From: Rebecca billardiae RCC1528 | Taxonomy: Eukaryota; Protista; Haptophyta | Assembly (NCBI GenBank): GCA_965240325.2 | Contig: OZ251248.1 | Location: 930,001 to 994,000 of the forward strand | Length of the DNA stretch: 64,000 bases | Direction: 5' to 3' | In this document: piece by piece, positions 39,901-42,021 of the stretch | Position numbering within the stretch: position 1 is the first letter of the stretch | Layout: each line of letters starts with the position of its first letter | The notes under the pieces: model-generated | The model's database searches: none | The model's input: only the letters and a program-made list of their open reading frames with translations | What the model was told of the DNA's origin: nothing | Translations under genes and position numbers: made by a program

Positions 39901-41355
39901 CATCAGGCGGTGGGCGCGGGGCGCGCGCGCGGGCCGCCGCCGCCGCCGCCGCCGCCCTCCGGCCGGGGGTCGCACGCCGCCGCGGGCGGCGCGGCGGCGG
40001 CGCGGAAGGAGGTGGCGCTGCACCTCACGCTCGCGCCCGCCGAGGCCTCCGCGCTCGTGCGCGCGCTCCACCAAGATCGGCCGGGGGCAGTAGCCGCCCT
40101 CGTCTCGTTCGACGCGCGCAACGCGCAGGCGTCGGTTGAGCAGGACCGAAGGATGATCTTTGAGGCGATCGAGGGTGAGTACGTGCTCTCGGCGCAGCAG
40201 GGGCAGATGCTCCGCCCGCGGTACAGGCCCTCGTCGCGCGGCGGCCGCGCGCGCGCGCCGAGCACCCTCCCAATGGAGCAGGCTGTCGACGCCTTCAACT
40301 CGACCGTCGCGGCCGAAGTGCGGCGCGCGCTCACCGCCTTCACTTGGGCCGTGGAGCACACGGGGGCGGCGCGGCCGGCGGGCGAGGGCGCGCTGGGCGG
40401 GGCGGCGGGGCTGCGCAGCCCGCCGCGCTCGATCCAGCACATGCGCTGCTACACCTCGCTCTCCTCCATCGCCTCCTCGCGCAACAGCGGCGCCGACGGC
40501 TCCTCCGGCCGCGCCACGTCCGGCGACTGGGCTGCGCGCGCGTCGGCGCGCGCGACGGGTGCGGACTGGGCGGCGCGTGCGCGGTCTGGTGACTGGGCGG
40601 CGCGGACGGCGGAGCTGCACGCGGCCGCGCACGCCGCCGACGCGGCCGAGTCGACCGAGGACGCCGAGCCCGACGCGCCGGGCCCGCACCACGGCTCGCC
40701 GCTCGGCCGAGGCCGCAAGCCGACGATGCCACTGTCGGCGCTCGGGCGAGCGCGCGCGCGCACGGCCGCCGCCTACGGCGCGCGCGGCTCAGCGTTCAGC
40801 AGCGGCGCACGCTGCTCGCTCGGCGGGAACGGCCTGGGCCGGGGCTCGGTGGGCGGCTCCGACCGTAGCGGCTCCGTCCTCTCCGCCGCCACCACCGCGC
40901 GCAGCACCTCGGTCGCCTCCTCCGCGATGACCACCTCGGCGGACGACGTCGGCGCAATGCTCGGCTTCGGCGCGTGTAACGGCGTCGGCGCGTGTGACGG
41001 CGTCGGCGGGTGTGACGGCGTCGGCGCGGGGAACGGCGTCGGCGCAGGGAACGGCGTCGGCTGTACCCCGCTGCCGCGCAAGCAGCAGCAGCCGCCCGCC
41101 ATGCTCGTCAGCCCGGCGGCGCTGCTCGCGGCGGCGGAGAGCACTACCTCGCCCAGCTCGCCGCCGAGCTCGCTGCCGCCGACGCCGGAGGTCGGCGCTC
41201 GGTTCGAGCGATGGTCCACGCTGTCCGCGCATGAGCAGCCCAGGCCGAGCCGAGCCGTCCGAGGAGGGCCAGGAGTCGGCGGCGGCGACGGGGTGGCCGC
41301 GGGGGCGCCGGCGGGCGGCGAGGGGCTGTCGTCTGCCCAGGGCCATGCTGACTGA
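36960..41355 (+). CDS. Signal peptide - PA-like domain - 7TM - TIR/HET-like domain protein; introns 37837-38035 and 39611-39757; C-terminus truncated by an insertion (ancestral stop 42066-42068)
   Basis: Signal MGRARARVALAAGAALLVPAGVAQA; PA-like FDVSGALV..GC..LAGSIVV..CSHEQHARAAGALGAVA; seven hydrophobic segments; cytosolic NVFVSHA...WLDIFSIRQH...VMVLDPWDAPVCLRRAWCLFEL...AQASVEQDRRMIF. Confidence 0.7.
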
Positions 41356-42021
41356 CAAATCGGATGATAACCCGTTTGCCGAGAGAGCTAAATCGGCTTG
41401 CGCAAGCCGATTTAGCTCTCTCGGCAAACGGGTTATCATCCGATTTGTCAAACGGGTTATCATCCGATTTGTCAGGACTAAAGTCGCCTGTTCGAATCCC
41501 ACTACCGACGTGCCACAAAAAGTTCTGCTTGCCCACTCTCCGGCTCCCCGCGAGAGCCTTACGGCCCGGGGGAGGAAGATGAGCCGGAGACGACGAAGAA
41601 TCGAACAGAAATCGGACAACGACCCACCGCCGACAGAAGACGAGCACGGCTCCACGAGAAGCGCAGCCCCCGGGCGAGTCACACCCGGGTCAACAACAAC
41701 GCTACAACAACGAGCCTCAAGAAGCCACAGCCGCAGAAAGGCTCACCGCCCACACACAGAAGCCGGAGCCTCTACGAAGCCACACAGCGCAGACGAGCAC
41801 GCAGGGCGGACACCCGGCGGGACAGACCGGGCGGGGAAGGAACAACCTCGTCAACAAATCCGGAGTCGGTAGACTGGGACGGACTACAGCCCCTCGCGGG
41901 GTGTCCCCAGGTGACCTCGGTTATGACAAATCGGATGATAACCCGTTTGCCGAGAGAGCTAAATCGGCTTGCGCAAGCCGATTTAGCTCTCTCGGCAAAC
42001 GGGTTATCATCCGATTTGTCA
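41353..42021. mobile_element. 669-bp element with two identical perfect 98-bp palindromic terminal repeats, TG...CA ends, 5-bp TSD CTGAC
   Basis: Palindromes at 41353-41450 and 41924-42021; extra 24-bp partial copy at 41451-41474; CTGAC at 41348-41352 and 42022-42026. Excision restores the host reading frame. Confidence 0.92.

Follow-up and report, generated by a model that had tools for sequence, protein, structure and literature searches.

What kind of mobile DNA carries the same perfect palindrome at each of its two ends? This question is raised by a 669-bp element at positions 41353-42021 of a 64,000-nucleotide stretch of the haptophyte Rebecca billardiae RCC1528 (assembly GCA_965240325.2, contig OZ251248.1, positions 930,001 to 994,000 of the forward strand), which was analysed at its full length and is called here the window. 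Both ends of the element are perfect, loop-less 98-bp palindromes, and the analysis supports a small mobile element that moved as one unit and is non-autonomous, with no coding capacity. The origin that we favour, and to which we give a probability of about 0.45, is a composite one, in which two miniature units made only of inverted repeats would have trapped 449 bp of DNA and then moved together by means of their outer ends. For practical purposes the element may best be regarded as a real insertion, young and non-autonomous, of the miniature, foldback or composite kind, with an unusual end architecture and an integrase-type footprint.

The left terminal repeat (41353-41450) is composed of two 49-nt arms that meet without any spacer at a short self-complementary motif (central GCGC), has TG...CA ends and is 100% identical to the right terminal repeat (41924-42021), each 98-mer being its own reverse complement. 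The first-pass annotation had described these ends as direct and inverted repeats at once, had reported an extra 24-bp copy beside the left one and had pointed out that the motif AAATCGG recurs in the arms, and all of these observations were reproduced. The palindromes lie exactly where they had been placed. The extra copy (41451-41474), a tandem repeat of the left palindrome's final 24 nt and a third '...TGTCA' end, was recovered by TRF (left palindrome plus copy: period 24, 2.1 copies, 100%) and by a repeat search, where it appears as a 26-nt repeat with a 2-nt CA overlap at the join. The window contains 13 occurrences of AAATCGG, of which 10 lie within the element, and nine of these 10 fall in the five arm copies. 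In the element the arm's outer ~25 nt is present five times and its inner part four times, all copies being identical, and the three '...TGTCA' and two 'TGACA...' ends could in structural terms be paired in several ways. In 100 shuffles of the window the arm patterns were never matched, and in the window itself the runner-up among non-simple palindromes is a perfect hairpin at 10797-10837, isolated, with arms of 19 nt and a loop of 3 nt. Measured as terminal inverted repeats, the arms extend over 98 nt, or over 109 nt at 96% once the flanks are counted, and as RNA each palindrome is predicted to fold into a hairpin with a 47-bp stem (-89.4 kcal/mol, z=-21). To our knowledge, perfect spacer-less palindromes of ~100 bp are rarely tolerated in genomes.

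The element is bordered by a 5-bp target-site duplication (TSD), CTGAC, found at 41348-41352 on the left and at 42022-42026 on the right. It is confined to the outer ends: neither of the inner junctions (AACGG, GGTTA) is duplicated, and we estimate the chance of a 5-bp match between the flanks, at the local base composition, at roughly 0.002. Outside the duplication the target is mirror-symmetric, with GCCATG on the left (41342-41347) and AATGGC on the right (42027-42032), and the terminal inverted repeat of the element reaches 11 nt into each flank. Computed on the 17-bp target, put together from host flanks of 11 nt and 6 nt, symmetry about the centre of the duplication involves 6 of the 8 position pairs (background P=0.022) and every one of the outer five (5/5, P=0.006). 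Integrase-type strand transfer is known to use weakly palindromic targets (PMC1905944), and TG..CA ends with TSDs of 3-6 bp mark the integrase/IS3-related clan (PMC10045372, PMC2836005). Together, the confinement of the duplication to the outer ends, the symmetry of the target and the interruption of a host reading frame establish that all 669 bp were inserted by a transposition-type event with 5-bp staggered cuts; from the outer position of CTGAC it had already been proposed that the unit moved as a whole. The same observations bear on the idea that the locus is an artefact of assembly or library preparation, or a laboratory construct, which we consider very improbable. Long perfect palindromes are unstable and sometimes arise from chimeric reads, but such an event would create neither a 5-bp duplication nor a symmetric target nor an in-frame interruption of a gene; moreover, the two palindromes stand 571 bp apart with unique sequence in between, and the plasmid and phage collections gave no match to the element.

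The interrupted frame belongs to a host open reading frame (ORF) at 37837-41355 (+), and the position of the element in the terminal part of this coding frame, absent from the first-pass annotation, is added here. The ORF ends at a TGA supplied by the element, whose first three bases form the in-frame stop, and the displaced tail of the frame is found at 42027-42071 (+), in frame with the right CTGAC copy, as 13 codons followed by two stops. Since the stop of the ORF is made of the first bases of the element and the same phase continues for 13 codons beyond it, the element falls inside the last 14 codons of the host frame, or in any case inside the terminal exon. Third-codon-position GC is 0.88-0.97 in the host ORF, 0.9-0.97 in host coding regions generally and 0.77 in the displaced tail, which taken alone is weak evidence, and codon periodicity fades over the final 150 nt of the host frame, leaving some room for a position in an intron or an untranslated region. 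Further upstream the frame is supported over ~38050-41200, and it is preceded by an exon-like block in another phase (~37000-37900) with a phase change near 37900-38050.

Judged by homology, the host ORF is a real gene, because 350 homologous proteins were obtained in an exhaustive search at E<=1e-3, over residues ~450-850. This conserved part (entry at 39760-39900, +) has hundreds of homologues and no Pfam family covers the host gene, so it represents an uncharacterised domain family. A paralogue of the host protein (P0004, 1317 aa, 33% identical) is present in short-read assemblies of the same organism. The exhaustive search returned only paralogues and distant homologues, with <=65% identity on short stretches and no near-identical fragment on record, and word searches with residues 560-1172 of the ORF and with its last 300 residues gave no match. 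The insertion puts an immediate stop in place of the last 13 codons of the gene, whose transcript would gain two hairpins with 47-bp stems and a 98-nt long-range duplex, and we regard it as a candidate natural allele affecting the mRNA. The host gene also contains an 18-bp in-frame tandem repeat (40962-41061, +; 5.6 copies, 90%), located about 300 bp 5' of the insertion.

The core of the element (41475-41923, +; 449 bp) had been described as ~450 bp of non-coding, A/C-skewed DNA. Its non-coding nature holds, as it lacks the codon-position GC periodicity of the host genes and no open frame of the core or of the whole element reaches the Pfam threshold, but the supposed A/C skew is rather a depletion of T (C 152, G 130, A 124 and T 43, n=449, + strand), which falls to only 5-7% over about 340 nt; apart from this the composition is that of ordinary non-coding DNA. 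The core has no similarity to anything else in the window, and its five open-frame translations, searched together, gave no match. It is limited on the left by a '...TGTCA' end and on the right by a 'TGACA...' end, both of which face away from it.

Other readings of the core were tried and rejected. Two sub-threshold Pfam matches that might have indicated a coding core (17 bits, where the cut-off is 27, and 11.5 bits, where it is 30, the second, at E=0.27, to a paramyxovirus C-protein family) are noise from low-complexity sequence. A structured RNA is not indicated, the predicted fold being no better than those of shuffles (z=-1.1). Degenerate copies of the terminal motif, considered as binding sites, reach a best local score of 16 against a shuffle mean of 15.6, with 243 of 500 shuffles doing as well, and the single AAATCGG of the core is at chance level. 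An imperfect 12-14-nt inverted repeat near the core ends (41497-41508 / 41866-41879) is paired in the predicted fold; by a rough estimate its significance is marginal, and it could be a remnant of older ends.

We favour the composite origin because the core is enclosed by ends that face away from it, each 98-mer is two-ended, and the primer-binding site (PBS) and polypurine tract (PPT) of a retroelement are lacking. Each 98-mer carries both end types, the duplication is found only outside, and the core is unrelated to the arms. Among the three alternatives put forward by the first-pass annotation, a composite of two spacer-less MITEs (miniature inverted-repeat transposable elements) fits best, given the outward-facing ends and the third end copy, although no solo 98-mer was seen. 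According to this model, an enzyme encoded elsewhere in the genome, probably a DDE transposase or an integrase making 5-bp staggers, would act on a DNA-level unit and recognise as its end the 49-nt arm or the outer ~25 nt of it. Each 98-bp palindrome would be a zero-spacer foldback element or MITE consisting of two inverted arms alone. Two such units would have landed about 450 bp apart, trapping ordinary non-coding DNA, and the enzyme would then have used the two outermost ends in the manner of a composite transposon, with a 5-bp staggered cut at a symmetric target and a repair step that duplicated CTGAC. The third end copy (41451-41474) would be a small tandem duplication or a deletion remnant at the CA microhomology. 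We thus infer that the composite moved at the DNA level and that the core is trapped DNA, and the insertion would be young, to judge from the 100% identity of all five arm copies and the intact duplication.

Several points weigh against a composite. A long terminal repeat (LTR) retroelement would leave just the same footprint of TG...CA ends, a 5-bp duplication and identical direct repeats. Independent insertions alone leave the 100% identity of four arms and the end copy unexplained, so that the composite needs either very recent activity or arm-to-arm conversion. The termini are unlike those of Ginger/TDD (TGTNR), the one described DNA-transposon group with this footprint. Only one copy was found, with no solo 98-mer, second composite or autonomous partner seen in the window or the collections, and the original duplications of the constituent units would have stayed behind with their outer flanks.

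The composite history could also be dispensed with, if the element were an ordinary foldback-type MITE with long terminal inverted repeats whose 98-bp repeat became palindromic through one fold-back template switch at the central GCGC. The element does have the inverted terminal repeats, the 5-bp duplication and the lack of coding capacity by which MITE and foldback elements are recognised, other long inverted-repeat elements with arms of 288-604 bp are present in the window, and the short self-complementary centre of the palindrome could allow strand switching. This history leaves unexplained, however, why the same complete palindrome stands at both ends and why there is a third end copy. We hold it to be distinctly unlikely, with the proviso that, with one copy, it is indistinguishable from the composite model.

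The shared footprint makes a retroelement the foremost of the alternatives, doubtful as it is. Under this explanation the element would resemble a terminal-repeat retrotransposon in miniature (TRIM), a non-autonomous LTR retroelement in which the 98-bp palindrome is an exceptionally short LTR that is wholly self-complementary, and in which copying through RNA depends on the reverse transcriptase (RT) and integrase of an autonomous LTR retrotransposon elsewhere. The outline fits, with a size below 1 kb, identical direct repeats of ~100 bp, TG...CA ends and a 5-bp duplication (PMC6934838). Reverse transcription automatically gives two identical repeats, and the 24-nt copy is located exactly at the position of a PBS and is complementary to LTR positions 1-24, where it might serve tRNA-independent self-priming. 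In the Tf1 scheme the PBS anneals to the transcript's 5' end, but in this element the complementary stretch is LTR positions 1-24, which a conventional LTR transcript would lack at its 5' end. Self-priming has been documented for Tf1/Sushi, and about 12% of LTR elements in plants are predicted to use it (PMC6317226).

It is in the internal hallmarks that the TRIM-like classification, suggested on first inspection together with the remark that no canonical PBS or PPT could be seen, fails, while its outline stands. On both strands the remark proved correct: there is no tRNA-complementary PBS (in neither orientation does a TGG lie within 12 nt of the repeat) and no PPT beside the repeats, the nearest purine run of at least 7 nt on the + strand being 81 nt from the 3' repeat and the - strand having none. 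ARAGORN found no tRNA in the window, and Rfam returned nothing at the gathering score or at E<=10, tRNA and hammerhead models included. A tRNA-like 3' end considered at 41475-41515 was rejected on the same two results and lies in the wrong orientation for a PBS. Furthermore, no RT, integrase, rve-type or transposase domain was found among the 46 long ORFs of the window, and reverse transcription leaves unexplained the perfect identity of the two arms inside one LTR.

This arm identity is what an intermediate with hairpin ends, the remaining alternative of the first-pass annotation, would explain, since the copying of a hairpin is the one process that automatically gives a perfect spacer-less palindrome; it would also render both ends identical and all arms 100% alike. 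The free form would be a linear DNA molecule that ends in hairpins, covalently closed or self-priming, the palindromes would be copied-through hairpins, and the extended form would have been integrated, in which case the underlying unit would run from centre to centre (41402-41972, 571 bp) and have 49-nt inverted ends. Taken further, this would define a previously undescribed, hairpin-ended class of eukaryotic mobile DNA, with palindromes regenerated in each cycle and insertion by an integrase-type enzyme with 5-bp staggers. We judge both the intermediate and the class to be improbable. The element encodes no replication initiator, protelomerase or other protein and none was detected in the window, the clean 5-bp duplication and the symmetric target point to strand transfer by a transposase or integrase and away from the known integration routes of hairpin replicons, an extra 24-nt copy at one end only is not predicted, and relatives are absent from the viral, phage, plasmid and metagenome collections. 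The intermediate accounts for the arms but finds no positive evidence, and we know of no such hairpin class described for eukaryotic nuclear transposons.

The search for other copies covered the 64-kb window and public collections, the rest of the host genome being outside its scope. There is no second copy of the element in the window, and scans of viral contigs gave none. In metagenome contigs the exact 20-mer was absent and a spaced-motif scan gave 3 unrelated chance matches (L001-L003), and in prokaryotic genomes a single chance 20-mer turned up, within a coding gene of a bacterium (L004). None of the eight fetched loci contains a copy, and four of them (L005-L008) are contigs of the same organism, which is represented in the Logan runs ERR14847148 and ERR14847151 by 3-5-kb contigs 99.2-99.3% identical to the window. 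That the organism is present in public short-read data also follows from a small gene of the window (16418-16729, +; T-depleted strand), whose Lys/Ala-rich product of 103 aa is on record exactly in both runs.

Full-text literature searches for palindromic or hairpin LTRs led only to the LTR-LTR circle junction and the TG/CA dinucleotide, with no fully palindromic repeats, and the papers retrieved on MITEs, composites and TSDs (mainly on bacterial MITEs and resistance transposons, with others on grapevine, nematode foldback elements and yeast) do not contain the term 'perfect palindrome'. In the papers and collections covered, with Repbase and Dfam outside the scope, we found no described family with this layout, in which two identical palindromes are the ends of a mobile unit. 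If the composite origin is true, non-coding zero-spacer foldback units capture and move host DNA in a eukaryote; if instead the arms are regenerated in each cycle, this would point to a new transposition intermediate.

The surroundings of the element are those of a GC-rich eukaryotic genome of flagellate type, with 60-83% GC, (TA)n tracts and genes for ankyrin, Arf-like, CFAP61, TMEM107, DnaJ and cNMP-binding proteins and for a protein with six EsV-1-7 repeats; the ORF of the latter (5022-6215, +) carries six of these cysteine-rich repeats (Pfam PF19114, E=7e-79). The window also contains a 1.73-kb inverted-repeat family of lower GC, with copy 1 at 42609-44337 (+), bordered on both sides by CGGCG, and copy 2 at 32311-34038 (-), whose flanks share CGTGCG with an offset of 1 nt. 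The two copies are 98.6% identical, have perfect 14-nt inverted ends (GTAGGGGGGCCAAA...) and show a duplication of about 5 bp with a 1-nt boundary ambiguity, and the three ORFs tested in copy 1 gave no Pfam match. The family is unrelated in sequence to the palindrome-ended element, its nearer copy being only about 590 bp away. Foldback-like pairs are found at 9260-10325 (arms 435 bp, 99.3%), 27160-28713 (arms 604 bp, 98.5%, ends TCATG...CATGA, GAAT on both sides), 62602-63478 (arms 288 bp, 90%) and 30657-31718 (arms 108 bp, 76%). None of these repeats of the window has ends in common with the element. Since the window holds both the 1.73-kb family with its ~5-bp duplications and several foldback-like repeats, elements of this general type are established in this genome.

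Two further repeats were observed in this region. Between the palindrome-ended element and the 1.73-kb element, in surroundings of 70-80% GC, (TA)n and (TA)n-GC variants extend over about 340 bp (42156-42497). A dispersed 190-bp repeat is present at 11407-11596 and 28862-29051, in inverted orientation and 100% identical, and its second copy lies ~150 bp past the foldback at 27160-28713.

Comparison with known systems begins with the retroelements. TRIMs are defined by direct repeats of 100-250 bp together with a PBS and a PPT (PMC6934838). The element is like them in being small, non-coding and flanked by identical direct repeats with TG...CA ends and a 5-bp duplication; it differs in that its 98-bp repeats are slightly shorter than this range and are inverted as well as direct, in lacking PBS and PPT, and in having an extra partial copy at the PBS position. 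Retrozymes and Penelope-like elements have a hammerhead in their repeats, which Rfam did not find here at E<=10. DIRS and other tyrosine-recombinase retroelements make no target-site duplication, and the clean 5-bp duplication sets the element apart from them.

Among DNA transposons, Ginger1, Ginger2/TDD, GingerRoot/IS3EU and IS481EU resemble the element in their inverted repeats (40-270 bp), their TG..CA ends and the length of their duplications (4-6 bp) (PMC2836005, PMC10045372, PMC6839031). The duplications are 4 bp in Ginger1, 4-5 bp in Ginger2/TDD and 5 bp in TDD-4 and TDD-5 (PMC2836005, PMC10045372), but 6 bp in GingerRoot/IS3EU and 4 or ~15 bp in IS481EU (PMC6839031, PMC10045372), from both of which the 5 bp seen here differ. 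An affiliation with Ginger, raised initially from the ends and the duplication length, was not upheld: Ginger termini read TGTNR...YNACA (PMC2836005), whereas the element starts with TGACA, the third base being A and not T, and no transposase was found in the window. We therefore file the element under none of TRIM, Ginger/TDD, GingerRoot/IS3EU and IS481EU.

By their description, not by sequence, rolling-hairpin and hairpin-telomere replicons are also comparable. The terminal palindromes of rolling-hairpin replicons are direct and inverted repeats of each other at the same time, as they are here, but the element differs in having no replication gene, no viral relatives in the collections searched, no internal bubbles or arms in its palindromes, and a clean 5-bp duplication. 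Foldback elements and near-palindromic MITEs are like it in being almost entirely inverted repeat, non-autonomous and able to form long hairpins, and differ from it in its zero spacer, its 100% arm identity and its two complete units that bracket a core. With composite transposons it has in common two identical end units, an unrelated trapped core and a duplication that only the outer ends carry; the known cases, however, are mainly bacterial and flanked by insertion sequences (IS), with units that encode the transposase, whereas the units found here are non-coding 98-bp palindromes in a eukaryote.

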